64,000 nt of DNA, from the NCBI GenBank assembly GCA_965649825.1, contig OZ287694.1, forward strand, positions 929,197 through 993,196, in the 5' to 3' direction. The notes under the pieces are model-generated. The model had not been told where the DNA came from, searched no databases, and saw only the letters and a list, made by a program, of their open reading frames with translations. Below, piece after piece: positions 18,801 to 45,790 of the stretch. The stretch is from Penicillus capitatus. Lineage: Eukaryota; Plantae; Chlorophyta. A program made the position numbers and the translations under genes. Within the stretch, counting starts at the first letter, position 1. The number at the start of each line of letters is the position of its first letter.

Positions 18801-21800
18801 GGATGGCTCCTCCTGTGGAAGCAGAGCAGTTTAGAAAGGAGGTATCGACGATCGACAGAGTATCGTTCTCTATCGCAGCGATCGATCCACCCGACAGAGA
18901 CGCTCTATCGTTTTCGAAGACGGTTTCAAGTGCACGAAGCGTCGAATTCTTCATCAGGATCGATCCTCCTGAGGATCCGCTGTTCTCGCGAAAACGACAC
19001 TTCGTCACTGTGATGACAGAATCATCGGCCAGAATCGCGCCTCCGTCTTCGATGGCTGAGTTATTTCGAATGACGCTGTCTTGAAGACTGATGCTGGAAT
19101 TGGACACTGCGTACAGGGCGCCACCCTGTTTAGATCGACTGTCTATGATTGACGTATTGTACAGGTTCATTTTGCCCCCGCGTTCGACGGAAAGACTCCC
19201 TCCTCCGTCGATCGCTGTGTTGATCGAAAAGATAACACCTCTGGTGACCAATTCTCCCTCGGAGCAGCGCACGGCACCGCCAACTCTATCTGCACGGTTT
19301 GATGACAGCATTGAATCTTCGACAATGACTCGTCCCGTTCCGTAAACGACCAATCCCCCACCGTTTTTGGCTGTGTTGGATTCCAGTCGGCAGTCCGTCA
19401 AATGCACCACAGAGTTACGTACATAAAAGGCGCCGCCATTCTCGGCAGCATTGCGTTGCACTGTGGAGTTCGACATGTTGAACACAGATTGTTGATCCAC
19501 GACAATTCCTCCTGCCGCTTCATCGCATCTGTTCCCCACGATCGTCAGGTTTCGTGCGACAACCGAAGCTAGGCCAGCAATCTGAATGGCACCACTGGCA
19601 TAGACGGCCGCATTCGATACAAACTCCAGGTCTGTCAGCGTCGCATTGCTACGAAAACAAGCCAAACCGCCCCCGTACTGCCCTGCGCTGTTGTTACCGA
19701 ATCTGCTGCTGCGCGCATCAAGTATACCGTCATCGAAGAAGACACCACCTCCAATTCTAGCTTCATTCGTCGCGATGTAGGCGTCCTTCAGGACGAGTCG
19801 TGATTCACCGGTAGCCAGAATACCACCTCCGTTCTGTGTGACAGAATTGTTCAGAAATGTATTGGAGGGGATTCTGGCTGTTCCATGGTCGATCGCGACA
19901 CCACCTCCTAGGGCGGCATGGTTGGAAGTGTAGTTGCAGGATCTGGAAGTCATATTCGATGTTGATACGAAAATCCCACCTCCTGTTCCACCAGCAGCAT
20001 TCGCCGTCCAATTGACTGCTTGTATGACAACACTGCTGTTCTCAGTGATCTGTGCGCCAGCACCGTTGGATGTTGCTGCATTCGATAGAAAGAGACATCG
20101 CCGGATGCTCAAATCTCTTGATGCACGGCTCGTGAATCCCCCTCCGTACGACGTGGCCGTGTTCGATTCGATTCTTGAGTCGATGATGCGACTGTCAGGT
20201 GCTGTATCTAAGTAGAAAGCGCCGCTATTGATGGCTGTGTTGTTAACCAGTGCCGATCTGCGAAGGATAAGTCTTTCCGATTCAGAGACCCACAGACATC
20301 CGCCACTACCAGACGTATTGTTATGGCATCGAAGTGCAGTTAGCTTTGGTGAAGAGACGCTTCGAATGTGGATCGCTCCTCCAGCATTGGATGCACTGTT
20401 GTTTTCGAAAAGGGAAGCTTCCACCTCGAACGAGCCTCCCTCTGCGAAGATCGCGCCACCATTGCTCCTAACCAGATTGTTGTGAAAGGCACAATGGTCC
20501 ATCGCCAGGACGGTGTCTGCAGTAGCGATGGCTCCCCCGATTTCTGCCACATTCGACACAAAACTGCAATTTGAGATGCTCAGGTGTTCGGTAGAATTCG
20601 ACTGGATAGAAGCTCCAAAACGATGAGCGGAATTGTTGTGAAAATAGCTGTCAGAAATGGCGACTGTCAGAGCGCGATCGAGCACGATGGCAGGATGTCC
20701 ATCGTTTTCGCTAAACCTGCTATCCAGCAGATCCAAGTTTCCCTCCACGATTCGAAGAACAGAGAGTTCATTTGCGTTTGCAGTCAGGCCAACAACAGCA
20801 GAGGTGGATAAGGACGATGCCACAATGAGTGACGCCGGCATTGTACTCTCACCAGTCAACCGCGTGTTTCTTTCTGCCACCACAGCCTGCAGGGTGTTCT
20901 CAGACGACAGGACAGCGAAGCAGGCGTCTCCACAGGCGTTGTCGGAAAAAACGACGTCCACCATCTCAACTGACGAACAGGATGCATTTCCAACGGAAAC
21001 GGCGCTCGTTCCGTTCAATGCGTTCTGTCTGAAGTGCACATGGTGCATGCGGATGATTCCCTCGATGTCCTCCGAATCGCAAGGATCGACTTGAATGATG
21101 GATGCCGCTGTTCTGGTGCCCAGAGTGCACTCTTCGAATACGAGATTGGAGAGCAGTACGTTCCGGGCCCTGAAGAAACCGAGCGCATCGCGCGATCAGA
21201 AAACCAAACGACAGTGCGAATCTTGCTGACCTGATGCGGAAGGCGCTTCCGTTTCTGGGACAGCGGAATCGAACCTTCTGATCTGTCTCGGGAAAAATGC
21301 CGTCTCGATTGTCTGCTCTTTCGACAAAGGAGCTCAGCGTCAAGTTCCATGGAACGTATGCGGTCGATGCCAATCGAGTTTTTCTCTCTGTCTGAAACAA
21401 CACCACATCGTTCTCTCGAGTGCAGGGAAGAATGGCGTTGAGATCATTTGCCACATTCTCCAGGGCCACTTGGTCAACTAGCCACGTCCTCGAGCCATCG
21501 AACAGATCTGAGATCTCAGAGTCCGTGAGACGGCATTGCACATCTAAACAATAGAATCATTTGAAACTGGGACCTCAACAGTCTTTGCGCGACCTGGGTT
21601 GTCAGGGTCGTCCACGTCTGTCTGCTGAAGACGCCTCGACGTTGTACTTCCCTAGAGGGAACACGCGTTATTCGATTGCGTCGCAGAGGCGAGGTCACTT
21701 GTAAGGATTGCACACGGTCTTCTTGGATGCCGTCGGAAGTGGATGGATGTGATGAGACGGAGGCGGCGCCTAAATGCAATCGGAGTCTTAGGCAAAGGGA

Positions 21801-22027
21801 ATAGGAACGACACGCGAAAGCCGAATGTTAGAGACGACGATGATCATCATGGAAAAGCCTGTCGGTTAAGACTCTCCGTGTCGGATTTAACTCCGCCGTA
21901 ACGCAAACCTACCCGATAGCAATTCAGCCGTTCCATGTCGGAAAATGCCTTCTTGGTGGTCCTTTGCGATGACTTTTGGAGAATTGAGGAGTAGACAACT
22001 CAAAGTGAGGACAATAGAAGAGACCAT
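15807..22027 (-). CDS. Giant secreted/membrane protein B, paralog of A: signal peptide, Pmp-like beta-helix, Cys-rich region, multi-pass TM domain
   Basis: ATG 22027 gives MVSSIVLTLSCLLLNSPKVIA. Exons lie in ORFs 20966-21541, 18520-21048, 17474-18520, 16919-17377 and 15807-16886, collinear with gene A (e.g. CTRENDVVL, ICPEW..NEAG.YGP, CVPCSG.Q.NF). The final exon has several hydrophobic helices. Confidence 0.85.
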
Positions 22028-22489
22028 TGTGTGCTTTCGGTGATGTCGTAGGGTGTTTGACTGGATGCTTGACTGTATTCGCATTTTTTTATTCTGCGTG
22101 ACCCAATAGACTTCAGTTCACAGGTACAAAACGCTTCGTGCTTTGTTAAACATTCACGTGTGGATATCGTATGCGTCAAGAACTTACCGATGTTAAGTAG
22201 AAGGCCTTGTGTCATGATGAACGGTTAAGAAGGAATGGTGGAGAAGCCGAGCCGCGGATCGTGTAGCTAGCTGCTTAGAAGGGCCAACGAAAGGTCGTAT
22301 CATTGTAACGTGGACCTTAGGTTCGAGTTCTCTCGAACGCTCACCGAAGTATAGAACGGTTAAGACTGTAGAAAATACGCAACCTACCTGTAGTGCTACG
22401 CGTCCTTCAGACATCTTAGCTTCGTCTGAGTCAAAAACCAACTATCCGCACTGAGGTTTTATAAACAAAATTGGAAACATCACGTTGCC

Positions 22490-23140
22490 GGCGTGTTTCT
22501 ACTATGCGTTCCAACAACGGCGGTAGAATTGCTGACGAACAGTAGACTATTGCCATTTCCAAGCTCGGTTTCGGTGGGTTTATCGAAATTCCTTAATCGG
22601 CTGACAACGTTCAAGAATCGAATAGACAACATCCTTACTCAGATTCCCTCTCTTTGTCATCTTACTCCTTCGGCAACAATTCTGGGTTGCATCGACGATG
22701 AATCCTTGAGAGGATGCAGAAACCCATATCCCTCCAAGTATAAACGCATTCTGAAGATTGTCCAATTGCCACGCTCCAGTCTTTCTCTCAGCCGCGGATC
22801 TGAACAGCGCAAAACCAGTTATTCTCCGCCTGTCTCAACTTGTAGATTGATCGTCAGTCTGTTCGATGCAATACGCGAGTGGCGTCGCCTCTTCAGACTT
22901 AAAGATCTCGAATGTTTTTAGGTATAGTGGACAGGTAGGTATTTCGAATCTCATAGCGCTCAAGTCTCTCAACCTCAAGGATTGTATGTTCTTCATATAT
23001 ACGAAAAACTATGCAGCATTCTGGAGCTCGAAAGCCTTTCTATTCCGTTGCTTGAAAGACATATTTACGCAGATATCGGTTTCCTCCGTTTCTAAGAATG
23101 CTGTGCACATTGGCAGTCGTATCCGACGCTCTCTGTAAAG
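22490..23140 (+). pseudogene. Decayed LRR gene remnant
   Basis: LRR-like fragments in shifting frames with stops: LTQIPSLCHLT, LFRLKDLECF*, GISNLIALKSLNLKDC, LELESLSIPLL. No consistent splice rescue found. Confidence 0.4.
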
Positions 23141-23989
23141 CTTTTGGACATCTCATGTTGCCAGAAGTGATCGGACTGGATATGCTGACACGCACTTACT
23201 TCAGTTGAACAAACTCCCAATCTATTCACCTTGCGATCAATTTAACGCAGCGAGATGTGGTCGATTGCCGCATTTCATCTCGAGTCGACACGATTGCCTA
23301 AGGCTACTGAGCGAAACAAAACGATGAAGTCATCGGAGTATGAGATTTGCAATGCGCCGCGCCGCGCAGTCTCTGCTTTTTGAAACGCGCACGATAGAGA
23401 TAGGCATTAATTAATAGGGTAGCCATGGTGTCTAAACACGAACGGTTTCTGACAAATGTACTGGAGCTTTTTGTTGGACTCTAATCTAGCACACAGAGCA
23501 TCTCTCGCACTTCTTGTAGACCAACGTCGGCGGTCGAGCGCTCTTTGCAGTTTGTCGACCGAGGGCCAGCAGGAGAGTATTATTCTCTTACGTAACTACG
23601 CCGTCTCACGTGCCAGCTATCCATCACATCGTTTCTCCGTTACGGAGAACAGAACTTGACGTCAGACAGACAGGTTTGAAAGAAAGGCGAAAGGCGAGAA
23701 TCCCCGAGACGGAAGAGACACTTTCTCGACAGCTACCCGTTTCTCGACAACTCCGGACGTCCGCGGACTTTTCGAGTAGGCAGCTGGTTGACAGCGACAC
23801 GCCCTGTAATCTCAGCCACGAATTCCGCAAACAGTAGCAGCTGCCTCGAATCTATGCTGGACAAGTCCAATCACTCGTCAGGTATTTAAGCCACGAGGAC
23901 GCCAGCGAACAAAGTGTTTTTGAGGTGCTTTTCATACAACCTCACCCCGTGTCGAATAAGAAGCGAACGCTTTTTTGCGTTTGAACACC

Positions 23990-25054
23990 ATGCAGCCTCC
24001 ACGTTCCAACACCCTCTTTCCTTTATGCGTACATCCTGCTTATCGTTCTCTGCATCAACCTGTCTTCTGACTGGGTATGCTGTGTCGCAGGTTCTGCTTT
24101 GTAGCTTTGCTCTCAGCGCAGGTAACTCTCTACGGAACAATCTTCTCCGTTAACGATGCGTTGTGTAACCCTTCAGCGACACGCACTTTGACGGACAGTT
24201 CCGCAACGGAAGATGGCAAAATTGAGACTGGGACGACGATAGTGGGTAGGCCACAGCGCCAATTGATGCAAGCCAACTATGACAGCGGCTACAGCTGCAG
24301 CACATATCCTTACATATTTATCGCGGACGTGTATTACGCGCCACCAATCGCATATCTCTGCAAAATCAAGTCCAAGAGTGGATTGTGCATGGATCCAATG
24401 GCGAAGCCAGAAGAGATCATCTACTGGTTCCAGAAAACCAACAAGGTGACGATGGTGATCGTGCTGAAAGCTCTGTTCGCTGCCAATGTGCCCTACAAAG
24501 TTGAATACGACGGCATTAGCTTTGGTGTCGTTCCCGATGAGAAAATTCTGCCTGCTGGCGTCTCTCTAAAACCGTACTTGAAAAAGAAATGTATAGTGAA
24601 ACCGCCAGTGGTCACGAAGAATCCTCCGGTGATCTTGGTGAAACCGCCAGTGGTCACGAAGAAGCCTCCGGTCGTCGTCCCATTCAAACCCAAAGCCGTC
24701 GTCCCGGTGAAGTCCAAAGTCGTCCCATTCAAACCGAAAGTCGTCGTCCCGGTGAAACCCAAAGTCGTCCCATTCCAGCCCAAGACCGTTGTCCCGATGA
24801 AACCCAAAGTCGTCCCATTCCAGCCCAAGACCGTCGTCCCGATGAAACCCAAAGTCGTCCCATTCCAGCCCAAGACCGTCGTCCCGATGAAACCCAAAGC
24901 CGTTCCATTCCAGCCCAAAGCCGTTCCATTCCAGCCCAAAGCCGTTCCATTCCAGCCCAAAGCCGTTCCATTCCAGCCCAAAGCCGTTCCATTCCAGCCC
25001 AAAGCCGTTCCATTCCAGCCCAAAGCCGTTCCATTCCAGCCCAAATTTCCATAA
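23990..25054 (+). CDS. Secreted Pro/Val/Lys-rich protein 3 of the unnamed family (signal peptide, RQLMQ motif, novel Cys domain, repetitive extensin-like tail)
   Basis: Exons 23990-24028, 24091-24121, 24177-25054. Protein: MQPPRSNTLFPLCVLLCSFALSA...RPQRQLMQ...CKIKSKSGLCMDP...LFAANVPYKVEYDGISF...(KAVPFQP)7. Confidence 0.8.
24597..25042 (+). repeat. Hierarchical coding tandem repeat: degenerate KPPVV units, then 3 x 45 bp (24761-24895), then 7 x 21 bp (24896-25042)
   Basis: 45-mer aaagtcgtcccattccagcccaagaccg(t/c)cgtcccgatgaaaccc-type unit and exact 21-mer aaagccgttccattccagccc, read directly. No spacers. Confidence 0.95.
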
Positions 25055-25814
25055 GTCTCAATGATCCCAGTAGTTCCAGTAAAAACGGTGAAATTTGGAT
25101 CTTACGAGAAACTGAGACCACCGAATGCTCCAAAATCATGAAACAAAACCTTGTCTAGCTATAGTATTCTATCCAGTATCATTCATTTTTTCTTTGGTGT
25201 TGAAGATCAGGTAGACGAGAATGGTGAATTGTTGCGATGTCGTTTCACTCTAGTGGTTTTGCAAGCGGATCGAGTGAGAATCCATTCAAGAACGAATGAT
25301 CGACAGTTTCCTTTAGATATCTGTAGTAAGACACGCACGTTTGTTAAGAGTTGGGTGGATCAAGACACATTTCGATATACTTGACGACTGCGCCGTTCGT
25401 ACATAACGAGTTGATTCGTACGATGACATTTCACTAAGGACATATGCGTCTCAGTGCAGACAGGACGATACCACACCAGCCTCTCCCCATTCACGCAAAC
25501 AACCCGATGCAAGGTGTTCCTAGGAAACGCATTAGATCACTGTCGGGATAAAAGAACGACGTCAGATATCGTATGGAAAAGAAAGGTGCGTCGTTGATGG
25601 AAGATAGACAACGACGTCAATGGCGCATAGTATATTCTCGATTGGATCCGTGCCAGCAGTTCGCCCTTCCTTCACATTCAAAGGTTCTCGGCTCGAATCA
25701 TTTTTTCGTTTGGCAGACAAGACGTGAATTCCACACCATGAGTTGAGATGCAGCAATTTCGGCATCTGTTTCAGGTACATTGCACGTATTCGAACCGCCA
25801 CGTAGCTGAGGACT

Positions 25815-28337
25815 ATGGCGAGCTTAAGCGTCGCCGACGTTCATATCGTTATCGTCTCTTTATTTCTTGTTTTCGGCGCAGCATTCTATGCCGCACTCAA
25901 ATCGAGAAAGCAGAAGCACGCAGCAGATGAATACTTCCTCGCCGGGCGTGCGATGCCATGGACGATCGTTGCAGCGTCTCTCTTTGCTTCAAACATAGGC
26001 CTTCTCCCTCCTTCTGTGTGCTTCCCTTCTTAAAATCCATCGCATTCCAGGAGCTGAGCATTTTGTGGGACAAGCCGGTGCTGCTGCTGCAGATGGAATG
26101 GCTATCAGTCTCTATGGTTTCTCAACAACACTCGATCCATTAGATCCAACACATTTGGCTTCCCAGAATGGACTGCTGCCTATCTTCTGTTGCTCCTTGG
26201 CTGGATCTTTGCTCCTGTCTTTCTGGGCGCCAAGCTTCAGACGATTCCTGAGTACCTGGAACGCAGATTCAACCAACACTGCAGGTTGACACGCGACACG
26301 CACTAAGCCTTGCTCGAAACTGAAGTCTGTGCTAGAGTCCTATTTGTATTGCTGACGATGGCAGCATATGTCGTGACGAAAATTGGCGCAACCCTGTACG
26401 CAGGAGGTGTCCTGTTGGATGTCATTGCGGGAATGTCGCTCTGGGAATCGACGCCTCTCATCATCATCGTCACAGCATCGTATACGATTGCCGGCGGCTT
26501 GACAGTACTTCAGATGTCATCATCCTCTGCCTTGCCATCACCCCTTGTGCCACAGGCAGTCATGTTTACGGACACCATTCAGACATGCATCTTCCTGTTT
26601 GGTGGCTTGCTGGGAACGGCGATCTCGCTCAATATGGTCGGAGGCCTGCACGGCATGTTCGATACGCTGAGCAGGGACGACATTGGACTTGAGCGGCTCC
26701 GTCACGCTCTGCGTCCTGCCGATGACAGAGATGTACCTGGGTAAGGCTCTTCTTCGTCGATCCTGTTCAGTGGAGGAACGCTAACAGGCTTGGAATGCTT
26801 ATTGGAATACCTGTCGTGAGTATATGGTATTGGTGCATTGATCAGGAAATGGTGCAACGAGTGCTCAGTTCTAAATCTCTGCCACAAGCAACGATGGGAA
26901 CCACTGTTGCCGCTCTTCTAAAAATGATCCCGCCTTTCATTACAGGCAGACCCTCCGCCAAGCGATTCTTACCATGACTCTGCTTTTCAGTTGTCCCTGG
27001 CTTGGTCGCTCGAACACTGTTTGAGCTCTGCATGGCAGACGACACTGGAGAAACGCATGCAGAATGGTGCACCACGGACTTGAGCGATTCCAAAGAGGCC
27101 GATCGTGCATATCCCCTTCTAGTGTTACGGGAATTTCCCAATGGCGTTCGAGGTCTGTCATGGTATGCCGATGAACTCTGTTCTCTACTATTCGTATCAC
27201 AGGTATTATGGTGGCTTCCTTTCTAGCGGCAATGATGTCATCATTGTCTTCTGTCTACAATTCAGCATCCACAATCTTTACGTATGACATTTATCAAAGG
27301 TTCTTTGACAAAGAAGGTAACGAAAGGCGACAGTATTGGCACAGCAGTCATCAACAAAGTCTGTTGAGGTTTTGCGTCTGAACAACATTTGGTGCAAGTG
27401 GGTCGAATCGTCACCGTTGTGCTTACAGGATTTACCTTTCTCTGGCTTCCTGTTGTCGATCAGTCCAGTCGAGGACTCTATGTGGTAGGAAGCTCAGTGT
27501 CGACGCATTCTTCGATGCGATTTCTTGTGGAGGTGGGACAAGAGGCAATGACGCATATCGTTCCAGCCATCTCTGCTCTGTTCGTTTGCGGAATCTTCGT
27601 TCCTTTTGCAAATGGAACAGGCGCATTGACAGGACTGATATCGGGCGTTGCACTTGGGATCACGCGCGCCATTCCTTACTTTGTTTTCCAAGATTACTGT
27701 GACGATCGTGTCGATGAAGATACACAAAGCCAAGTATGAGTGCACCCATACCATGAATCGATCGCCAGCTAATGTGGCACTTCTGCTTAGAGTTTCAATA
27801 GTTTTAATTGGATGGCCTGTCTGAACTTCAATTATTTTGCCATGGTGTTGTTCTTGTTCACATCTGGCGTGATCTGCAGTGTGAGTTGGTGGTCAGATCG
27901 ACCGAGCGAAAGTCAACTACAAGGTCCAAAGAGCTTGTTCACTCTGTATGAGAGGTTATCAAATAACGACGCCGGAATGCAGGTCTGATCTCGGTATTGG
28001 TTGCGAGACGAAGAAGCATCAATGGTGAGATTCAGATGACGAATCTCCAATACAGCGAGATGCAAGAAACGGATCGTGGAGTGTCAAATGGGTCAGTCCA
28101 TCACTCTCTTCTTTCTTTAACTGATAGCTAACGTATGGCGATTTTTAAAGGGAAATGGAAGACGCTGAGGCACAGGGAGATAAGGGCGCAGCATCCTCAT
28201 CTGATGGAGTGGAGTATGAATTTGCCTTCCGGAAAAGGCTATCGTCTTTCTTCAATGTCGATAACGGCTATGCGACTCATATCCTTGGAGCATGTGTTCT
28301 AATCAGCGTCACAATGCTGATTGCAGTTTTCCATTAA
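25815..28337 (+). CDS. Sodium:solute symporter (SSS/SLC5, SGLT/SMIT-like), multi-exon
   Basis: EYFLAGRAMPW...ASLFASNIG, AVMFTDTIQ, WYWCIDQEMVQRVLS, AMMSSLSSVYNSASTIFTYDIYQ motifs across exons. Confidence 0.9.
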
Positions 28338-28771
28338 CGGATGAGAAAAGAACGCTGTTTTGCTGCCAAGTGGCGGAGGAATGTAAGAAGCGGAAATGCA
28401 AATTGATGCTCGTCTGCAGACTGCATCTCTGTTAAGGCAACTCTTGATTGCTGGCAAACACCTTGCAAATCAAGGGGCACATTACTCTATTGTGTGTTGT
28501 CTTCTATAGACTGTCGTCTCCTATGGTTCTTTCTGACAGCCATTTCACTTAATTGACTGTGGCTCGATCTTCTCTCAGATTCGCTCGCACGATCGAACGA
28601 TACCGAAGGCAATCATGATGACAACTGCCATGAACAAAAACTTAATCATCGAAATGCGAATGCACTTCTTTGAAGGATTGTTGTTCATACGTACGTCTCT
28701 ATGCATAGATGAATGTCAGCGGCTTATCGACAGAAGGGGAACCACTGCCGCATTAGCAATGAAAGGGATTC

Positions 28772-29733
28772 CTACTGATCTTCCTTCTCAATCCAGACGT
28801 AGCAGACAAAAGAATTCTTGTCGTAGAAGCTGCGCTTCACTGTCCCACCTGCTTTGCGAACCAGTTCTTTAACAGCATCGAAGCTTCTCTTTTTCGTCGA
28901 ATACACAACCATTCTCTCTCCCTCTTCGAAAACATATTCCTTGTCACCCAATTTGACCACTTGACGCGATTTTGCAACGACATTGTGTTCGACTTGCGTT
29001 TCCTCGGGATTATATCCAGGTTTGTACTCGTAAGCACTCTTGTCGAAATTCGCTCCGTATTCTTTGTTCATCACATCGCAGATGCTTAGCATAAATTCTG
29101 TGAACTTGGGAGTGCTATAGGCCACGACATTTGTTTCGGGATTCTGGTTCGTGTCGAAAGACGCAAGCAATACCCCACCTTCTCCCAGAGCATCGATTGT
29201 GTATCTCAGGAGATCAATCGCCGCTAGAAGACACAAAACACAGATAACGAGAATCACACAAAAGTACACTCTTTACCGTCATCCTGGAAACAGCCGACCA
29301 TGCTGCAGGCTAGAAGTCCAAATCGCGTGTTTCCTGGCGGAAGCTGCATCGGCTTGAATACGTCGGCGACAAAACGATGGAATTTGAGGTCAGGGAACCT
29401 TGTTTTGAAGTTATCCTCCGCCACTTTCAAGACCTCTTTATCAACGTCAACGGCGACGAAAGATTCCAGATCTTCAAACGCCTCGAGAAGGGGAATGGAT
29501 TTGTCGCACAGACCGGCACAGAATTCCACAAACGTGCGGTTCTTTCCTGCAAGCTCAGCGATGTGCGCTGCATTGTCGGCGAGAATCGAGAGATCGTTGT
29601 AGTGCACGTAGAAAGCTTGTTCTTTGCTCCCGGCGTCAAAGAGCGCTCCCGAGTCGTCGTTGTATAGAAACGTGTGGTTCAATTTCTTCGGCGTGCTGGA
29701 GAGACCTTCCTGAGCAATGGATAAGGAATTCAT
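28772..29733 (-). CDS. EgtD/EasF-family (Methyltransf_33) SAM-dependent N-methyltransferase, divergent, copy 1 (~302 aa)
   Basis: Exons 29733-29277 and 29223-28772 (53-nt GT-AG intron). Collinear with EgtD: KKLNHTFLY..ALFD..YVHYNDLSIL..TFVEFCAG..DK..DVDKEVL..GGVLL.SFD..NKEY.ANFD..EEGERM. Confidence 0.8.
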
Positions 29734-30051
29734 TCCGCCGCCGGATATAGTACTCAATGGCGATGCAAATAGCTGCTGCTTATGGTCGTGAATGCGGCTT
29801 CAGCGCAGTACGACCATTAAATGTCTCGTAAGATGATCATCCAGACTGGTCCGCACGATCGAACGCTGAACGTCATCATGCTGACATTTACCATGAACAA
29901 ACACTTAACTTCATCTTCAAAGTACGAATGCATTTCTTTGCAGATTCACTGTTCAGCTTTTTCTCAAAAAATTCTGACTGTTCATCTGCTCGAAAAGCAG
30001 TGGCTCATCGACAAAAAAGGAGCTACTGCCATATTAGAAAGGAATGGATTC

Positions 30052-31013
30052 CTACTGCTCTTCCTTCTCAATCCAGACGTAACAGATGAAAGAATTCTTG
30101 TCGTAGAAGCTGCGCTTCACTGTCCCACCTGCTTTGCGAACCAGTTCTTTAACAGCATCAAAGCTTCTCTTTTTCGTCGAATACACAATCATTCTCTCTC
30201 CCTCTTCGAAAACGTATTCCTTGTCACCCAATTTGACCACTTGACGCGATTTTGCAATCATGTTGTGATCGACTTGAGACTCCTCGGGATTCCACGCAGG
30301 ACTATACTCGTAAGCGCTTTTGTCAAAGTTCGCGCTGTATTCTTTGTTCATCACATCGCAGATACTCAAGACAAATTCTTTGAATTTGGGAGTGAGATAG
30401 GGCATAAGCACTGTTTCGGGATTTTGGTTCGTGTCGAAAGATGAAAGCAATACCCCGCCTTCGCCCAAAGCATCGATTGTGCATCTCAATAGTGTAATCG
30501 CCGCTAGAAGACACGAAACACAGATAACGAGAATCACACAAAACTGTATTCTTTACCGTCGTCCTGGAAACAACCGACCATGCTGCAGGCTAGAAGTCCG
30601 AATCGCGTGTTTCCTGGCGGAAGCTGCATCGGCTTGAATACGTCGGCGACGAAATGATGGAATTTGAGTTCAGGGAACTTCTTCTTGTAGTTCGCCTCCG
30701 CCACCTTCAAGACCTCTTTGTCGACGTCGTTTGCGACGAAAGACTCCAGATCTTCAAACGCCTCGAGAAGGGGAATGGATTTGTCGCACAGGCCGGCGCA
30801 GAATTCCACAAACGTGCGGTTCTTTCCTGCGAGTTCAGCGATGTGTGCTGCATTGTCGGCGAGAATCGATAGATCGTTGTAGTGCACGTAGTAAGGTTGT
30901 TCTTTGCTCGCCGCGTCGAAGAGCGCTCCTGAGTCGTCGTTGTATAGAAACGTATGGTTCAATTTCTTCGGCGTGCTGGAAAAACCTTTATGAGCAGTAG
31001 TTAAGGAATTCAT
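30052..31013 (-). CDS. EgtD/EasF-family SAM-dependent N-methyltransferase, divergent, copy 2 (~302 aa)
   Basis: Exons 31013-30557 and 30503-30052. Same structure as copy 1, offset 1280 bp. Confidence 0.8.
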
Positions 31014-31372
31014 CTCGCCGACGGACACAACACGCTGCGACAATGCAAATAATCGATAGCTTGTGATCGTGAATGCGGCCTTTAGCGAAGGTTACGACCA
31101 TTAAATGCCTCGGAAGATGATCATCCTGATGCGCGCAGCACAGCAGAATCATCCACTGCATTCGTACGTCGAGAGTCCTTTCAGTAAGGCGGTGATCGCG
31201 AGTCGACCTATGAGAGCAATGTGCATCGAGATACAAGCCTCTGTCTGCATCTGCAGAAGGTAAGACAACAAACACACATCCAAGTGAACGCCTCAGGGAT
31301 CACTTAATCTTGTAGATCCATGTCTGCTCGTGTCCATTTCGAAAAGAAGTCAGTTGACGAGGCGCTTTCGAT

Positions 31373-32722
31373 CTAGAGAATCTGTCGCATATGGCTCACG
31401 AAGTCTTCGATAACGCTGTTCTTTTCGTCCACGGTGGAAAACTCGTATCTCCTCTGGTGTCCCGGAATCAATCTGAGAAAATCATACTCGCGTAATTTGA
31501 GCAGGCTCTCCAACTGCAGCTTCGGATCATCCTTGTTATACTCAAGCAGCATCGAAAAACTCTTCGATTTCTCAGAGTACAGAAAATGATCACCTATGTC
31601 CCACGCAAAAAAGACGGTGTGTATAGCAGAGATGGCACGTTCTCTGTCAAACCTGTGAACATCGATTTCGATGGTTTGTGAAACAAGCAGAGGGATCCTG
31701 GTGTGTGACCAGGTGTGAAAATAATCTCTAGCTCTTCCACATCCACATTGTCACCCATCGTCCACGGTCCCTCTCCTTCCAACTGAACCTCGCAGTCCTT
31801 TGTGTCTTCGTTGACATCCGATTTGTGAATGATTCGCGGAACATCATAGTGCCGTGCCCATTTTGCATGGTCTCCCACATCATCCCTGGCCAACAGAAAC
31901 GTCATTTCTGTTTTCGGGACGCCGCTTTCGATGGTGACATGTGTGTGAGAAAAATGACATCCACGCCGCCGAGGGCATCAAATCTCTGAACGAGGGTCGG
32001 ATGGAAGCGCGGCGAGTCCACAAGCACATTTCCATGCACGCTCTTAATGAAGTAGGAACTGGCAGCGTAGGCTGCTTCGTCTGTAAAGCCGCAGAAATAA
32101 ATCGTATCTGTCCCGGGCACTGGAATCGGAAATGTCTGCTGAGCACGGGTCAATTCTCCCAATTCTCGTCTCTTCACATGGATGGAGTAACTGACGCCAC
32201 AGAACAGACAACGGTCACTTCCACAGAGCACAGTAGGTGCGAGTGAGATACGTTGGACACGAAAGCAATGCTTGCATGCTGGCCAATCTCTCTTCGGCGT
32301 TTCTGGGTTGTCGGTAGACAGCTGATTGATTTTCCATCCGTGTAAAGACGTTCGGCGACATGAAGCGGCAGGTATCGCAGTCTACAGAACAACGTATGAG
32401 ACGGCCGGAGTGTTGTTGTCGGAGAACAACACCGATACAGGTATGATCGACATAGAACTCGCCAGGGACGTTTTCTGGTCTCGGTGCCCTACAATCCTTC
32501 GTCGGCGGCGCCTGTTTCGCTACACGACTGCGTAGAACGCGACGCGTCGACGCGTATCCCGTCGACTTCAACGGTAAAGCTTTCGGCACCTTGATCATCC
32601 CGCGTGTTACTGTTAATGGAATAGGGTACTGTTGAAGATAGAGAGCAGAAGGGATTCTGAAACATCGGGTTCAACCGTCGGGCAGACGAAACTTTGTAGA
32701 GACCGCCAGTCAGACTAGCCAT
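31373..32722 (-). CDS. Metallo-beta-lactamase-fold hydrolase with N-terminal ferredoxin-like (CxxCxxC) domain, plastid-type presequence
   Basis: EFYVDHTCIDCDTCRFMSPNVF, AASSYFI..GNVLVDSPRF, FLTH.DDVGDH, FTPGHTPGSLCL, FTGDH, LIPGH across exons. Stop at 31373. Confidence 0.85.
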
Positions 32723-33009
32723 GATTGCAATTTGAATCAGCGCACGCATTCGACACAACAGGCTTCCTATCAAAAGAAGCCCTTTGCTTCCTCTACGCTA
32801 TCCAAACGGAGACTGCCAAGAGCCAGAGCCCAAACTTGAGCTCGGTCTGTTCTCTAGTGGATTCATTGCCTCGCTCGTGGCTATAAGTTGTCGATTCCGC
32901 GTTTCTCCTTCGCGACTGCGCATCGCGTAGATGTGTTGCATAACAGAACGATGCTGTCACGTCAGCGACGTTGTACGACAGCTTTTCGTTCAGACGGAGG
33001 AGTCTCCAG

Positions 33010-33582
33010 ATGGCAAACGTTGTCGTGTATCATCCCATCACGGGCGTTCCCGAAGAATACAACGAGTTTCTCCCGCATGACAGTACAGAGTACAGGCAAT
33101 GGAAGGCGTCGCTGGGCGAGGGAGACACATCCAGTGGCAAAAACATCGATGGCAAGGTCGAAAACGAGAAGAAGCTGCCAGGAGGCAAGATACAGAAGAA
33201 AGTGGCGAGAGAAGTTGTTCTGGAAACGACAACGCGTAACAAGAAAAAAAGCATCACGACTGTTCATGGACTCGATGCCTTTGGTGTGAAACTCTCGGCA
33301 GCGGCTAAGGCATGTGGCAAGAAATTCGCTTCGGGGGCATCGGTCAACAAAACGGCCTCTGGACGCGAACGCATTGACATCCAGGTAAGTACCGCCCTCG
33401 CCTTTGGTCACCTTTTGTTGAGAGTGCGTGGTACGTAGGGAGACGTCTCCTACGAGTTGCCAGATTTCTTGCTGAGTCTATACGGCGATAGCGGACTGCG
33501 AAAACGCCATCTCTTTCAGATCGTCAACAAGAAGAAGGAAGCGGTTTACGATTCGGATTCGGACTCGGAGGACGCAACATAA
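33010..33582 (+). CDS. DENR: Density-regulated protein / TMA22 (SUI1-domain translation reinitiation factor)
   Basis: YHPITGVPEEYNEF, RNKKKSITTVHGLDAFGVKL, KKFASGASV, IDIQ|GDV; intron 33385-33438. Confidence 0.92.
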
Positions 33583-33625
33583 AAGGCCAATGTGTGATCT
33601 TGGATGCGTTTCCGCATAGAGAAGT

Positions 33626-35574
33626 CTATCTGTTGTAACGACCTTGGCGAAGTCGATTGCGGAGTTTGGATCGTTCGGTCGAGTTGGCCGAGGGCAGACC
33701 TTCGATCAGGCGCTGCAGCTCCTTTGGATCCACACCTTTGCCGATGGCAGATTGAATGACCTCCTCAACAGACAACGATTCTTCTTGCGCTTCGTCATCG
33801 AATAGCACATCTTCTGTCTCGTGCATAAAGTCCAGAGAGTCTGTCTCAGTCTCATCCACAAACTCCAGAGATTCTGTGTCATCCGTAAAGTTGATAGCTT
33901 CTTGTTCGGCAAGGCTTCGGACATCGACGGTTATTGTCTTTTCCTGTGCCGATGGAATGTCTCCCTTCTCTTTTATGTCATATCCAAAATTGTCTTTCAT
34001 GAAAGTACTGGCGTCTGAAACAAGTCCACTGAATACGGTGCTGCGCTTAACACCTTCTTCAACGATGTCAGGTTCTGTCGAGATAGGATAGACGTTTCCT
34101 GTCGATGGAGTGGTGGTGCGATCTTTCTTCTTTGGTGGCTTGTATGGTGGAGGAATTGTGACCGACGGTTTCTTGGGTCTCTGAGGTCTCTCCACTCCCA
34201 ATTCATCGCAGATCAAATCGTCCACGGCAGAGAGATCCGATACCGACAAAAGTGGTTTGTTGTTCGTTTGTGCATCTTTGCTGCTCGCATTGCCTGATCG
34301 ACGATTCTTTCTACCAGTGGCTGTGTTCGGGGTGCCTGGATTCGACTTCGTTCTGCTTTTCTTTTTTGTATCTTCCTCTTTCGAGGGAGCTGATTTTTTT
34401 GAACTTCGACGTTGCTGAGGTGGATTGCTGCGTTCTCTGCTTTTCGTTGCTGGCTTGGAAATGTCGTCGACGTCAAAGATTTCTTCCTTCAGGCCATCCA
34501 TCTTGACGTTCAAAACACCTGTCTTCTCATCTTCTTCCAAAACAGCCTCTCCAGACTGCAGCCCATCTTGGACAGTCTTCACACGTTTGGTGATCTTGTC
34601 GGCGTAGTAGCCTGGCAGGTCTGTAATGTCGTCCACCATTTTGTCCTTGATCTCCCACACATTCTTCTCCGGGTTCTTTCGATCGCGCTGCAACTTGATG
34701 GCATCCGCCAGGAGATTGCCCAGTTTCATGTTTCGCGTCTCGACGGAGGCAATCGTGCAGCAGACAGGCGGCAATCCGCTCTCTTCAATAACTTCCACCA
34801 CTACTGCCTGCGATTCAATAGGCAGTCCTCCAAACACAATCGTCCGACGAGAACCCCACGTCGCATCCCTACACCACCGCCACATCTCAGTCGTCAATGA
34901 CGACTGTTATCTCGATAAAGTCGAGGGATACACCTTTTCCAGGTAGAAGGCCGAGGTCCTGACCAGTCGGGTTCAGGCAGTTCCAGTGCTTGTTCGACAG
35001 ACATGTTCAGCACTTCTGTTCCGAAGACGGGGATGACCTTGACGTGTTTTCCCAACAGTTTGTCCACCGTCAGGCGCATCATTGGCAGTTCTTCCAGGTG
35101 AAACCCAGCAAGGAGAAGCACAGGTGGGCCAAAGTACTGTGCATCTCTCAGATCGGATTTGATATAGTCTGGGATGTCTTTGCGATTATCCAAGTATTCG
35201 TCAAAAGTAACATTGAATCCCTGCGGATCCGTCTGCTCCGGAGCCCAAGGGGGATGCTTTTCAAGCATCTCTTTGTCTTCGCCAATTTCCTAGACACCAA
35301 CATCCATAACACCTTTCCGACACAATAAAGAAGTGACCTTATAAAAGGCGTCATCCAACACAAGATCATCGAAATCGACAACGGCGTCATCCAGCACGGA
35401 ATCAGTTTCGTCATCGTCATCTTTTGAGTAATTTGCTTTGAATCGTTGCGTCCTCAATGGCAGGACCTTTTGAGATCGCCATCTCGAGCATTCTTGCCGC
35501 CGAGGGCGACACCATCTGCTGCCATGAACCTGTACTCGGTTCGGCTGAATCGACAGGCAACGCATTGCTTTCAT
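33626..35574 (-). CDS. DUF3783-like plastid-targeted protein with long acidic/low-complexity C-terminal extension
   Basis: Exons in ORFs 35290-35574, 34894-35268 and 33626-34897 join in frame (YK|EIGEDKEMLEKHPPW; WKR|DATWGSRR). GPPVLLLAGF and RTIVFGGL motifs. Confidence 0.65.
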
Positions 35575-36259
35575 CGGACTCGACGTCGTTCGTCAGCGGA
35601 TGCGTTAAGCTCCGCGCTTTTATCAATAAACTGCATATGACAGATTGCCCGAAGAGAAAACAAACACACCGTGCCCTCACTTTCTCGATCGTCTGTTTCA
35701 CAGCTTCTCTGCCGTTCACCAGAAGTTTCGTCACCTGTGTGCATCGGCATTCTGCCAAATGAGATTTCAGAGCTGTCGACACACACCACTTCTGGATCGG
35801 ACTCAAACCGCGCCTGTTCGAATTCCTTCCGTGCACTCTCACGCAACCGATCCCTCCTGCACAGGAAGTCTACGTGTCAACAGTCGCGTGGTAGGGATGA
35901 CCTTACCAGAGAACTCCAGCAGAATCCGGGAAATCAAACAAACGCGAACACCGCCACACTTCTCGATACCTACTCATACGACGCCGATTTGAAGAGAAGA
36001 TCCCTGGGATTGTCCATCGTCTACAGAGAGAGCGCTTCGCGCCGTGTGGTCAGAAGTGCCGTCGAAGGCCTCGAAGGTTGATGTCCCTATAGTGATGGAT
36101 GGATGCTCGTGGAGGAATGGAAGGATAGGCGGATATGCGCACCTTGAGTGTCTCTTCTAGAATCGTCTCGGCGTCGTCGATTTCCTTGATCGAGAAGCGT
36201 AAACGCTGAATCGTCGAGAAAGACGCGTCGAAAGAAGAAACGAAGGCTCTTCGCAACAT
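35571..36259 (-). CDS. LYR-motif (Complex1_LYR) family protein, 5 introns, not captured as one ORF
   Basis: Spliced: MLRRAF...TLK|GHQPSRPSTALLTTRREALSL|YREVWRCSRLFDFPDSAGVLW|RDRLRESARKEFEQARFESDPEV|VTKLLVNGREAVKQTIEK|FIDKSAEL...RVR*. Matches the plant LYR protein pattern. Confidence 0.8.
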
Positions 36260-36332
36260 TATGATGTGACGTCCCACAGCAACAAAAGAACGTGCGTGTG
36301 CACAGACAAAATCGAACCGCGCTTCGTCTCTC

Positions 36333-37386
36333 TCAGGCCGTCTCGTCACCCGCGTCCATGATCAGGTCTTTTTCCAGACCGAATGCGTCGCCGGTGCTCA
36401 CGGGCTTTCGAGAATTGTCTCCCGATGCCCACGTATGGTAATCTTTCTCTAACTGTGATAGGAATCTCGGCATGGCGATGTCGAGGATCTTGGCGAGCAT
36501 TCGTCCTCCCAGTCCATTGAACACCTTGATCGAGACGAGGGCGTTGATCCACCTTGGTACAATTCCCGCCACCTGTCAACATTACTCGCAATCGTCGATC
36601 GCCGATGTGACATGTCTCACCTGTACAATGCAATCTCCCGTGAGCTTCAACTCTCCCGTCTCTTCATCCTTGATATAGGAGACGTAATTCCTCATGTAAC
36701 AAGCAAAGCGTTCATTAGAGTCTGCTGCCGATTTTGAGCCTTCTAACTGTAGAATTCACACCTTCTCACACTTTTACTCACAAAAAGCAGAGAAGACATT
36801 CGTACGGTGCATTTCAGAAGTTGCACTTCGCATCCGGTGTCATGCGGCGTGACAGTCAGGATCATAACTGGCGTCATCTTGATACGGAAGAGACTCACGG
36901 TGCTCGTCTGTACTTTGAAAGTATTCTCGTCGAGTCTCTCCACTTTCTCGGCGTCCAAGACAGAATACTGACTCACTGGCAGTGTCATGTACTCCGCTAA
37001 GCAGCACACTCGATGACTTGGAGAGGGGATGTGAGGAGTGACGACATAGAGGCCGATCGCCTTCGGTAATGACACGACTGCATGCTTTCTTCGCCTGGTA
37101 GCGCGAGACGCGATGCCGATTCTTTTCGGTCATTGCAGAGGGATGCAAGTCGATCTCCTCTTCCTCCTCCACTGGGACACCATTTGTGGCCAGATCGTCT
37201 GCTGTGTCGTCAGAATTAGACAGAATCGCTTCCTAACAGCACCATCCGTCAGTACAGTTTCATGACGCAAACCTGCGTCGTGCATCTTGCTGACAAAGAA
37301 GACGCGGGAATCGTTCTGGAGCATTGCGCGTGAATGGGTGAGGTGACCGAGAGATGGAAATGTGACGTGGAGTGAAATGCGAGCAT
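36333..37386 (-). CDS. DUF1997-family (SRPBCC-like) protein, plastid-type presequence
   Basis: LAEYMTLPVSQYSVLDAEKVERLDENTFKV, PRFLSQLEKDYHTWASG. Start 37386 (MLAFHS...) inferred from splice compatibility. Confidence 0.75.
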
Positions 37387-37549
37387 GGCCCGCGTACAAC
37401 AGCAAGGCTGTCCGATCGACGGAGGTGGGCTCGGGTCATGACGACGATTCGAGGGACCGATCGGCGACAGGCGATGATGTGACGGCCAGCAAGAAGGAAG
37501 CAGATACCCGTGCCGAGCTTTTCGGGACCGCGAATCTGGTAGCCCATTG

Positions 37550-38656
37550 ATGTCTCGACCGAAATTCAAGAGCGGCGAGAAAGTTTTAGTGCCGCATACG
37601 GATAAGCACTACCCGGCCAAGGTGAGTCGGTCAGTCGTCCCGTCTCTGAAGCCCAAGGCATGTTTGTTCACTGGAGGTTCTGAAGTCTGAGGTGCGACCG
37701 GACGGCACGCGACACTACCTGCTGCATTATACAGTGCATCCTCTTTGTTTTTGACGGGAAAAGTGTGATATGGTGTGAGAAGGGATGGAATAAGAAATGG
37801 GATGAATGGGTGACCGAAGCCGAAATCCACCCATCCGCTTCACTCAAGATTTCCCTCCCGAAGAAACGCGAAGCTGTCGAGAAGCCGAAAGCGACGCCGC
37901 CACCCGAGAAGCAACAGAAGACTGAGATTCCCGAAAAGCCTGATGTCGTCCCCAAACCCCATCGAAAACGCAAAGCGGATCTCACGGACAAAGACGCACA
38001 ACTGCAGGTAGACTCAGCGATTTCGAGCGAGATTCTTTTTGCCAGAAACTGAACGCCGTAATGCAGTTGCAGTTAGAAATTCCTCCGATTCTCAAGAAGC
38101 AACTGTTGGATGAGTACGACATCGTTACATCCTCTCAGAAAACGGTGACCCTGCCACGCAAGCCCAATGCCATGCAGATCCTGCGGCAGTTCTACGAATA
38201 CGGCAAGAAAGAACTGCGTTGTACCAACAGTGAACTCCAGATGCTCATCACGGGACTAGAGGAGTACATCGACAAGACGCTCGAAGATTTCCTGCTGTAT
38301 GAGATCGAATGGAAACAGGCAGCACGGGTAAGAATCTAAACAATATCGACAGGGCTGGGTGGCTGATGTTGGTGCGTTCAAAGCTCTTGAGTGGTGGTGT
38401 CAGTGCTTCGTCCATCTATGGCGCAGAGCATCTGCTGCGTTTATTGGTCAAGCTCCCAGAACTGGTTCCGCACACGTCGGCGACATCACAGCAAGCAGCT
38501 GCCCTCAATGCTCGTCTCAGTGTGCGTTTCTCTGCGTTTGAGTCGTGCGTGAATGTGGTTGGTTGTATTGGGCAGGACTTTTTGGATTTCCTCGTCATTC
38601 ATCGACACACGTTCTTTTCTAACGTGAAGGATTACACGGAGGTATCAGACTATTAA
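37550..38656 (+). CDS. MRG1: MRG15/EAF3-family chromatin protein (chromo-barrel + MRG domain)
   Basis: MSRPKFKSGEKVLVPHTDKHYPAK, GWNKKWDEWV, LEIPPILKKQLLDEY, LLYEIE, SSIYGAEHLLRLLVKLPEL. Confidence 0.9.
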
Positions 38657-38706
38657 CGGCTGAGCTGTTCAAAAGAGTTTGGATGTACGACGTTGTGTGG
38701 GTTTAA

Positions 38707-39623
38707 ATGCGTTGTCTGCTGCACTACCCTTCGCGCTTCAGTGTGGCGAGAATTGCGCGAAAGTCCGGTCGAAACCGAAGGCGTTGCACACGAGGCCAGG
38801 CTGCGTCGTCGTCGTCGTCTCATAACAGAGCTGCGCCTCTCGAAGTTCATGTGCGACCGGCGACGAGTCGGGTACGTCAGCAATACCTTGTGCCCTGCTA
38901 CCACCTCCAAGCGACGATGTCTGTGGACAGGATTTTTGGGCAGCAGCGGAGGTCCATGCCTCTTCCTTTCATCCCAAAGGAACACCTCTCGCCTACAACA
39001 TCGCAAAGATCGCACGGTTCAATGACATCGTCCGCAGCAGCGACGCGCGTTTTCTGACCGACTGTCTCGTCGGACGGGACGGCAGGTCATGCCAAAAGAC
39101 ACAACACCGTACCATCCATCGTGTGGCTGGCTGCAGATATGTGTGTCTGGTGGCACATTGCGATGTGTTTGAGAAGGAGGGCATGTCGCCGACGGACGAA
39201 GAGAATTCGATCATGACATCCATGCTGCGCAGTCTCTACCCGACAGAATTCAGAGCGGGTATCGTGGAGAATCCATGTGTCCGTGGAATCTTCGGTGCCA
39301 TGAATGTCGACACGACGGGTCGCTTCATTCCTCGACTCGCGCTCGTTGTGAATGGCGGCGGGGCGAAGCGACAGCGACCTCAGGGATGCGCTTACTTCAG
39401 CAATCTCTCCGTTCTGCCCACTGTCCGTCGACGCGGCATTGGATCGTCGCTGATCCGCGAGGCCGAGCGATTGTCGACGGAATGGGGCTGTTGGGGCGCG
39501 GCACTGCATTGTCGTCCTGACAATTCAAGCGCCTACCGTCTCTACACCAAACAGGGCTATGCAGAAGTCGAAGGTGCCCCAAGAGACAAGAACGACTGCG
39601 TGTTGTTGGCCAAAGTCTACTGA
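38707..39623 (+). CDS. GNAT family acetyltransferase, plastid-type
   Basis: VRPATSR|DFWAAAEVHASSF (intron 38872-38930); AYFSNLSVLPTVRRRGIGSSLI; LHCRPDNSSAYRLYTKQGY. Confidence 0.85.
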
Positions 39624-39954
39624 CGGACAGACGGACGACGTCTTCTGCCGCATCCTGGCGTCAGCCAATCTTTCGATGCAACAATGTAGCACGGTATCGA
39701 AGTGCAAGACATGATCGCCGAAGCTTGTCGTTTGCGTGTGGAGACGTGGCGCTTGCCGACCGACCGACCGACATCAACGAGATGCGCGAGACAGGTCCTG
39801 TCGTTGACGTCGTCGCCGTCATTCATCATCGTTTTTCATCCATCCTTGCAAAACGCGCGTCATTTACATCGTGTCCCCATCCACCTTCATCTTCACCTTG
39901 TGAGTGTTGAACATTTGCGCAGATACTGTGAGACCGACGCCGACGACGGTCGAA

Positions 39955-40850
39955 ATGTCGACGCCTTCGAGACAGGTAAACAACCCCCTGAATTTCCTCT
40001 GTGCTTTGCGGACAGTGGCTCTATGGCAGAGACTCGTACGAGACTATAGAAGGCTTCAAAAAGACCCACCAGATGGCGTCAATGGAGCGCCGGACCCAGA
40101 AAATATCATGTCTTGGAATGCTGTTATCTTTGGCCCTGAAGACACTCCTTGGGAAGGAGGTGTGGACTCTTCAGCTGCTGTTCCTTGTTTCGGATTCCTA
40201 ACCTGTCCCTTGCAGGCACGTTTAAACTGGCGTTGGAATTTTCTGAGGAGTATCCTAATAAAGCCCCGACGGTGAAATTCATTTCTAAGGTGTTTCATCC
40301 TAACGGTAAGGGCGATGCGATGCATGTCAGTCAGTCATGTCGAGTGGCTGAGATGCCTGTCGTGGTGCAGTGTACCCTGATGGAAGCATCTGTCTTGATA
40401 TCCTGCAGAAACAGTGGAGTCCAATATATGACGTCTGCGCCATTCTCACCTCTATTCAATCACTGCTGACGGACCCCAATCCCAATTCACCTGCCAATCC
40501 CGAAGCGGCTCAGCTTTTTTCAGACAATAGGTCTCACTCGTTCGATTGCGCATGTCGCGTCTCTCACACAAAGTGTTGTCAGGCGAGAGTATATGCGATA
40601 TGTGCAGGACTGTGTCGAGCAAAGCTGGATGGATGAGGAGGAAGAGGAAGAGGATCATGATGATGTGCCGAGCAAAGAGGGCGGCGATTCGACATCACGA
40701 GCGGAGACATCGAACGACGGCGTTGAGAAGGAGCTGCCAAATCTGAAGCGTCCACAAGACACCGTGGCTGTTCAAGAGAATCACGAACTGCTGACGTGCG
40801 ACGACTCGAAACAGCCATTGTGCAAACGGATGCGTTGCGAAAAGGCATGA
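39955..40850 (+). CDS. UBC2: E2 ubiquitin-conjugating enzyme, RAD6/UBC2 type, with acidic tail and extra C-terminal extension
   Basis: MSTPSRQ|[30 protein letters not shown]|TFKL, FHPN|[38 protein letters not shown]. Confidence 0.93.
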
Positions 40851-45624: not shown

Positions 45625-45790
45625 GGTAATGACGATAGCGCAGCAGTGGTGTTGGATTGTGTTGGTACGTTCGCGCGTTTCATGACGTTGGTGGACGATA
45701 ATGACGATGCCGTCCGTCACCAGATCTCATTTCCTTTCGCCTTTTCCTCGTCTTCCAGATCTGCTCCGTGTACCTGTCGTCGATTTCAGG

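Follow-up and report, generated by a model that had tools for sequence, protein, structure and literature searches.

The question raised by this locus is what would be methylated by enzymes that have kept the fold of EgtD while the residues by which EgtD is recognised have been replaced. Textbooks present EgtD as the enzyme through which ergothioneine biosynthesis is entered, and the residues of its active site count as hallmarks of the family. Two genes of this kind, designated here as A and B, are located at positions 28772-31013 of a 64,000-nucleotide (nt) stretch of contig OZ287694.1 from the green alga Penicillus capitatus (the whole stretch is referred to below as the window). We consider it reasonably probable that their products are cytosolic, stand-alone, S-adenosylmethionine (SAM)-dependent small-molecule methyltransferases of the EgtD fold, which are not histidine trimethylases and have no role in ergothioneine synthesis, and that the two genes represent two paralogue types with distinct specificities or acting at distinct steps. 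What is new here is that both types are present in a sister genome, that the silent sites of the copies have been homogenised, and that the 11 sites separating the types are all amino-acid changes.

The interval extends from the stop codon of gene A to the ATG of gene B, and the genes are arranged head to tail on the minus strand. After removal of the intron, each copy forms a single uninterrupted 909-nt open reading frame (ORF) of 302 codons, and the copies are 88.1% identical at the protein and 89.3% at the DNA level. They belong to a tandem duplication with a period of ~1.28 kb, whose units are 84.7% identical over 1277 alignment columns (see the table below for the coordinates), while no third methyltransferase copy was detected in the window by tblastn. 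A first-pass annotation of this DNA had proposed a tandem pair of intron-containing genes with exactly the same limits, in agreement with the gene models, which have one 53-nt intron per copy. All of the motifs it had pointed out (EFCAG, CSMVGC, VEH/VDH and VYSTKK) were found, as were the C-terminal differences between the copies (VVAYSTPKFTEFM versus VLMPYLTPKFKEFV and KPGY versus SPAW). An ORF of 207 amino acids on the strand opposite to gene B is most likely a by-product of the composition of the coding strand and not a gene.

Both proteins matched the Pfam family PF10017 (Methyltransf_33) far beyond chance, with E-values of 1.8e-49 and 6.5e-47 and scores of 168.9 and 160.5 bits for A and B, respectively, against a cutoff of 23. 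The matches covered protein residues 7/8-297 and model positions 6-302 and 5-302 out of 304. The only solved structures related by sequence were those of EgtD from Mycobacterium smegmatis and M. tuberculosis (E ~3e-17). The protein of gene A was modelled with AlphaFold2 from a 69-sequence alignment, resulting in a mean predicted local distance difference test (pLDDT) value of 96.3 and a predicted template modelling (pTM) score of 0.92. When this model was compared with the PDB by Foldseek, the top 15 matches were all EgtD (template modelling (TM) score 0.88-0.93, root-mean-square deviation 1.7-2.5 Å, 24-25% identity), while the best methyltransferase fold other than EgtD reached a TM score of only ~0.5. 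Given the Pfam coverage and the difference in TM score between EgtD and the next fold, an EgtD fold over the entire protein can be regarded as established. The end-to-end alignment with EgtD claimed previously is thereby upheld, both by the full-length PF10017 match and by the AlphaFold overlay with a TM score of ~0.9.

Membership in the family did not extend to its characterised subgroups. Proteins A and B are not EgtD orthologues, since their scores against the NCBIfam EgtD equivalog TIGR03438 (162.3 and 155.2 bits, respectively) were below its cutoff of 290.9; those against the EasF model TIGR03439 (87.1 and 85.4 bits) were likewise below the cutoff of 205.55. A methyltransferase acting on sulfur in the synthesis of dimethylsulfoniopropionate (the DSYE/DsyG type, with methylthiohydroxybutyrate as substrate) was ruled out, because the methyltransferase domain of DsyG belongs to PF08241 (PMC11306096) and that of A and B to PF10017. 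A literature search for Methyltransf_33/PF10017 returned only irrelevant Plasmodium gene identifiers.

In EgtD, the carboxylate of the substrate is held by Tyr56, Tyr206 and Ser284 and its alpha-amino group by Asn166 together with Gly161, while the imidazole is recognised by Glu282 and a water molecule held by Thr213/Ala205 (PMC8593015, PMC9103826); Asn166 and Gly161 are critical for sequential methylation (PMC9103826). The corresponding residues were counted in a MAFFT L-INS-i alignment of 151 sequences, 143 of which were other representatives of the family. Asn166, present in 140 of these 143, is Cys, Cys, Cys, Ala, Ala and Val in the clade formed by A, B and their close relatives. Gly161 and the first glycine of motif I, each found in all 143 others, have both become Cys in A, B and L001g, a gene of the sister genome described below. 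Glu282 (130/143) is Tyr, Leu or Phe in the clade (Tyr260 in A and B), Asp208 (138/143) is Thr, Asn or Lys (Thr in A and B), Thr163 (Thr in 105 and Ser in 24, that is 129/143) is Met or Leu in five of six clade members, and Met252 (105/143) is His in six of eight. Moreover, the Gly-Val-Thr213 loop of EgtD is two residues shorter in A and B. The residues on the imidazole side, including Glu282, the Thr213 loop, Asp208, Asn217 and Met252, have given way to bulkier, mostly apolar residues or His.

The carboxylate-binding positions showed a different pattern: Tyr206 is invariant both in the others and in the clade, Tyr56 (142/143) is retained by all clade members except gene A (Phe41), and Ser284 (127/143) has become Thr in A and B and varies among the other clade members. 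In the second exon of gene A, Tyr188 of the AYSTPK motif corresponds to EgtD Tyr206 and His232 of VEH to Met252, while VYSTKK contains Tyr260 (Glu282), Thr262 (Ser284) and Lys264 (Lys286). The SAM contacts Glu70, Gly74, Lys78, Asp124 and Ser144 (A numbering) are kept, and so are Gly147, Asp176, Glu255 and Lys264. The first-pass annotation had described the substrate pocket as rewritten, and the replacement here of Asn166, Gly161, Glu282, Asp208 and the first motif-I glycine, all near-invariant in the 143 others, bears this out. It had also named the positions of Met252 and Glu282 as a switch between His and Trp specificity, and both are altered in the tryptophan-binding EgtD variant M252V/E282A, as given in the title of PDB entry 4pip. 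Its pairing of TEVSCK with VYSTKK is backed by the MAFFT alignment of 151 sequences, which is ungapped at this place, while a pairwise HMMER alignment puts a one-residue gap there.

Judged by these replacements, A and B probably methylate a small molecule other than histidine. With the SAM-binding half largely intact, both proteins are predicted to still bind SAM and to transfer its methyl group. The substrate would still be a small, amino-acid-like carboxylate, because the equivalent of Tyr206 is kept and the B-type retains the whole trio of Tyr41, Tyr188 and Thr262. It would be smaller or more hydrophobic than that of EgtD, and the side-chain pocket would be both smaller and more hydrophobic, because small or charged residues have been exchanged for Met, Tyr, His and aliphatic residues and the loop has been shortened. 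The methyl acceptor may not be a primary alpha-amine accommodated as in EgtD, because the Asn has been lost throughout the clade, yet is kept in bacterial relatives already devoid of Glu282. The earlier designation of the pair as N-methyltransferases is accordingly not established, the Asn that positions the alpha-amino group being missing clade-wide. Several points weigh against this interpretation. Both the first motif-I glycine and Gly161 are Cys in A, B and their orthologues, which could weaken the binding of SAM or of the substrate; the conservation of Ser284 and Tyr39 does not extend to the wider clade, so that the carboxylate argument is strongest for the A/B group only; and what is proposed for the pocket depends on the alignment to EgtD.

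Alternative functions can be weighed against the same set of residues. It is very unlikely that A and B are canonical, merely divergent histidine N-alpha-trimethylases producing hercynine for ergothioneine. Although EgtD is the top match in Pfam, NCBIfam and the PDB alike, the bit scores reach about half of the equivalog cutoff, and Glu282, the Thr213 loop (with its two-residue deletion), Asp208, Asn166 and Gly161 have all been replaced. Furthermore, when the window and the related loci L001-L004, L010 and L012 were searched by tblastn with the halves of four fusion proteins that lie outside the methyltransferase (two EgtB-like and two apparently not), nothing EgtB-like came up at E <= 1; together with the stand-alone character of both proteins, this agrees with the absence of an EgtB-like partner domain noted previously. 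A change limited to side-chain specificity, which would make A and B betaine synthases for aromatic or other amino acids still trimethylating the primary alpha-amino group, comparable to the relatives of EgtD that accept Trp or Tyr naturally or through engineering, appears unlikely as well. The equivalents of Met252 and Glu282, the two positions that make EgtD bind tryptophan in 4pip, have indeed been changed, and Tyr24, Phe32, Tyr41 (in the B-type), Tyr188 and Thr262 might still keep the backbone of an amino acid in place. However, Asn166, which is critical for sequential methylation together with Gly161 (PMC9103826), is absent from every clade member, while it persists in 140 of the 143 others, including the bacterial proteins P0013 and P0033, which lack Glu282.

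Loss of catalysis, with A and B surviving as pseudoenzymes in a ligand-binding or regulatory role, would fit the Cys residues that A, B and their orthologues have instead of the first motif-I glycine, Gly161 and Asn166, but we regard it as distinctly improbable, since strong purifying selection acts throughout the protein, the SAM-binding half included, the acidic and basic residues contacting SAM are kept, and both glycines are retained in other members of the clade. A tentative and rather doubtful further step would be to consider the clade as a new eukaryotic family with an altered acceptor, which might be a nitrogen, either secondary or part of a ring, in a small carboxylate or else a sulfur or oxygen atom, with A and B serving two steps or two substrates. 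An imino acid or a pyridine carboxylate could be examples of such substrates, leading to osmolytes of the proline-betaine, trigonelline or homarine type; if this were true, genes would be assigned to an abundant methylated metabolite that has no known biosynthetic enzyme in these organisms. The reading of A and B as small-molecule methyltransferases with a substrate other than histidine remains the one that we prefer. The existence of two functional types is considered below by comparison with a related genome.

In ENA, the window is part of contig ctg340529 of sample ERZ25074695. The sister genome (ENA sample ERZ26696514) contains both copy types, which are not adjacent but ~11 kb apart. The window is collinear with the A-type locus L012 over positions 18474-29840, the neighbouring symporter gene included, and with the B-type locus L001 over positions 29833-40923. 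Gene A is thus the positional orthologue of L012g and gene B that of L001g, and the collinear flanks imply that the duplication is older than the split of the two genomes. A recent duplication as the cause of the similarity between A and B was ruled out for the same reason, both types being present at collinear positions in the sister genome. The stretch between the two copies in that genome (L001 ~11650-20963, continuing into L012 1-9076; ~11 kb) contains only short ORFs without a Pfam match and is absent from the window; it represents either an insertion in the sister genome or a deletion in the genome of the window.

Despite this age, the number of synonymous substitutions per synonymous site (dS) was lower within each genome (0.34 for A-B and 0.22 for L012g-L001g) than between the orthologues of the two genomes (0.70-0.76). 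At the nucleotide level, 57 informative sites grouped the genes by genome, 39 of them in codons without an amino-acid change, and the introns were also more alike within each genome. By contrast, only 11 sites grouped the genes by type, all of them nonsynonymous (codons 6, 9, 40, 41, 95, 120, 185, 186, 187, 234 and 292). Because dS is lower within a genome than between orthologues and all type sites are nonsynonymous, the pattern carries the signature of gene conversion that would homogenise neutral sites while selection keeps the type differences. Several of these sites belong to the pocket: residue 41, equivalent to the carboxylate-binding Tyr56 of EgtD, is Phe in the A-type and Tyr in the B-type; residues 185-187 directly precede Tyr188 (Tyr206 of EgtD) and match the segment containing Ala205; and residue 234 is two positions past the equivalent of Met252.

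The ratio of nonsynonymous to synonymous substitution rates (dN/dS) between the copies, whose determination had been proposed in the first-pass annotation, was 0.20, and values of 0.08-0.10 were obtained against the orthologues; such low ratios indicate that both genes are under purifying selection. More unique changes were found in A than in B. The differences between the A- and B-types at pocket sites argue for two specificities held by selection. A and B would then be old paralogue types, kept different at pocket positions and therefore possibly endowed with two related but distinct specificities or responsible for two steps. The functional divergence of the copies suggested by the first-pass annotation gains weight from the persistence of type-specific residues in two genomes in spite of gene conversion. 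Unlike the methyltransferases, which differ between the genomes at dS ~0.7, the importin-alpha protein of the window is 100% identical to its counterpart in the sister contig; its best named matches, only 55-57% identical, are all from green algae and plants, so that the lineage of the organism is poorly covered by named databases.

Relatives of the pair proved to be scarce. An exhaustive HMMER search against 1.84 billion cluster representatives gave 2369 matches, of which only 3 were below 1e-30, and the relatives with more than 35% identity amounted to a handful of sequences in ENA, JGI and Logan assemblies, either proteins or fragments the size of an exon. Word-indexed homologue searches, either with A alone or with the clade alignment, recovered only the same few relatives, and named protein databases contain no member of the clade. 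The group is a small eukaryotic subfamily that had not been named before, and its members were encountered solely in metagenome contigs of eukaryotes. Six gene models of relatives were spliced by hand. Three of them (L001g, L012g and L010g) are of the A/B type and originate from ERZ26696514, L002g, located on a different contig of that sample, is a paralogue with 38% identity, and L003g and L004g come from ERZ23500384 and SRR20820735, respectively. In all six, the encoded protein is 302-303 amino acids long, and a single intron (43-54 nt) interrupts the gene at exactly the codon position and phase found in A and B. The clade was monophyletic in 50 of 50 neighbour-joining bootstraps. It represents an old gene family of eukaryotes that comprises two or more ancient paralogues. 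In L002, the paralogue and a convergent fragment of an amino-acid transporter gene (Aa_trans) adjoin each other (10001-10894 and 12139-12735).

The nearest neighbours outside the clade in a rough neighbour-joining tree were the bacterial proteins P0013 and P0033, at distances of more than 1.6 substitutions per site. A bacterial origin of the clade is thus possible, as judged from the tree. For the old horizontal transfer envisaged in the first-pass annotation, the bacterial affiliation of the nearest non-clade relatives is favourable, but the transfer itself is not demonstrated, the branches being very long; the shared intron means that the gene has long been eukaryotic and says nothing more about transfer. 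The loci of P0013 and P0033 (L006 6001-6948, L007, L008 and L009 2680-3630) are conjugative elements, in which these genes are surrounded by those for a relaxase, a type IV secretion system coupling protein, ArdC, ArdA, ParB and HipA. Such surroundings point to a function unconnected with ergothioneine.

Features of the window, with positions counted from its first nucleotide
Feature	Position	Strand	Description
Gene A, exon 1	29277-29733	-	ATG at 29733; codons 1-152 and first base of codon 153; N-terminal helices and Rossmann/SAM-binding half, with EFCAG and CSMVGC
Gene A, intron	29224-29276	-	53 nt, GTAAAG...TCTAG, phase 1, directly 3' of the ...FQDD codons
Gene A, exon 2	28772-29223	-	stop codon 28772-28774; substrate-binding half
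Gene B, exon 1	30557-31013	-	ATG at 31013
Gene B, intron	30504-30556	-	53 nt, GTAAAG...TCTAG; 48 of 53 bases the same as in the gene A intron
Gene B, exon 2	30052-30503	-	stop codon 30052-30054
Tandem duplication	28586-31124		two units
Duplication unit 1	28586-29840		gene A and flanks
Duplication unit 2	29852-31124		gene B and flanks
ORF antisense to gene B	29821-30444	+	207 amino acids
Sodium:solute symporter gene	25806-28337	+	Pfam SSF; multi-intron; convergent with gene A
Ferredoxin-type/metallo-beta-lactamase-fold gene	31373-32598	-	4Fe-4S ferredoxin-type (Fer4_13); several short exons; upstream of gene B
Importin-alpha gene	44053-45720	-	
Decarboxylase fusion ORF	54275-56446	-	724 amino acids; S-adenosylmethionine decarboxylase (46-262) and ornithine/arginine decarboxylase (358-693)
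Repeat-containing ORF	297-4454	-	1386 amino acids, intron-free; Chlamydia polymorphic-membrane-protein repeats
Repeat-containing ORF	18523-21048	-	842 amino acids, intron-free; Chlamydia polymorphic-membrane-protein repeats

The window as a whole is eukaryotic nuclear DNA, gene-dense and rich in very short introns, with importin-alpha, SUI1 and symporter genes among its content; the SUI1 gene is, like the ferredoxin-type gene, located upstream of B. A functional link between the methyltransferases and transporters was considered and not counted, since the SSF gene beside A and the Aa_trans gene beside L002g belong to different families at two loci; the presence of the SSF gene next to the A-type copy in the sister genome follows from simple collinearity, and the convergent transporter genes at both loci may be a coincidence. 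Nor do the other flanking genes offer a reliable functional link. The collinear locus also contains a DUF1997 gene, which hints at a plastid, although its N-terminus is too fragmented for reading a targeting signal. The 724-amino-acid ORF looks like a fused enzyme of polyamine synthesis, its domains being in the order that has been reported for Plasmodium. The two long ORFs with polymorphic-membrane-protein repeats, one of which also has a NosD-like region, are odd content for nuclear DNA of a eukaryote. No match was obtained when the 64-kb window was scanned with Rfam and for tRNA genes.

A and B belong to a eukaryote-only branch of the family in which the fold and most of the SAM site have been kept, while the residues for the amino group and for the side chain have both been replaced. 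If they function as proposed, they would offer enzymologists a natural pair of variants to see how the EgtD fold switches its substrate and, possibly, its acceptor atom, and a methylated metabolite that is still an orphan might thereby be given its gene. In evolutionary terms, the pair would represent a clean natural case of paralogues that selection keeps apart in the pocket, the remainder of the gene being homogenised by gene conversion.

Among the known systems, the bacterial P0013 and P0033 resemble A and B in having the K-x-I/L-P-L-L sequence after motif I and in lacking Glu282, but, in contrast to them, have kept Asn166, Gly161 and Asp208, have no intron and are located on conjugative elements. 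The eukaryotic members of Methyltransf_33 available for comparison are the dimethylallyltryptophan N-methyltransferase EasF/FgaMT and the methyltransferase domain of the fungal Egt1. EasF demonstrates that this fold acts on substrates other than histidine; A and B, however, score below the TIGR03439 cutoff and, in contrast to Egt1, have no fused EgtB-like domain. With EgtD of M. smegmatis and M. tuberculosis (PDB 4pio, 4uy6 and 7scf), A and B share the two-domain fold (TM ~0.9), the stand-alone organisation and the size of ~300-320 amino acids, as well as Tyr39, Phe47, Tyr206, Lys286 and the SAM contacts at Glu70, Gly74, Lys78 and Asp124 of A. They are only 24-25% identical to it and differ by the Asn166Cys, Gly161Cys, Glu282Tyr, Met252His, Thr163Met and Asp208Thr replacements, by the Gly-Val-Thr213 loop that is shorter by two residues, by the lack of an EgtB partner in the window and the related loci and by being encoded in a eukaryotic gene with an intron. 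In the engineered EgtD M252V/E282A (4pip), the same two positions have been changed, albeit to Val and Ala, while A and B have His and Tyr, and Asn166, lost from A and B, has been kept.

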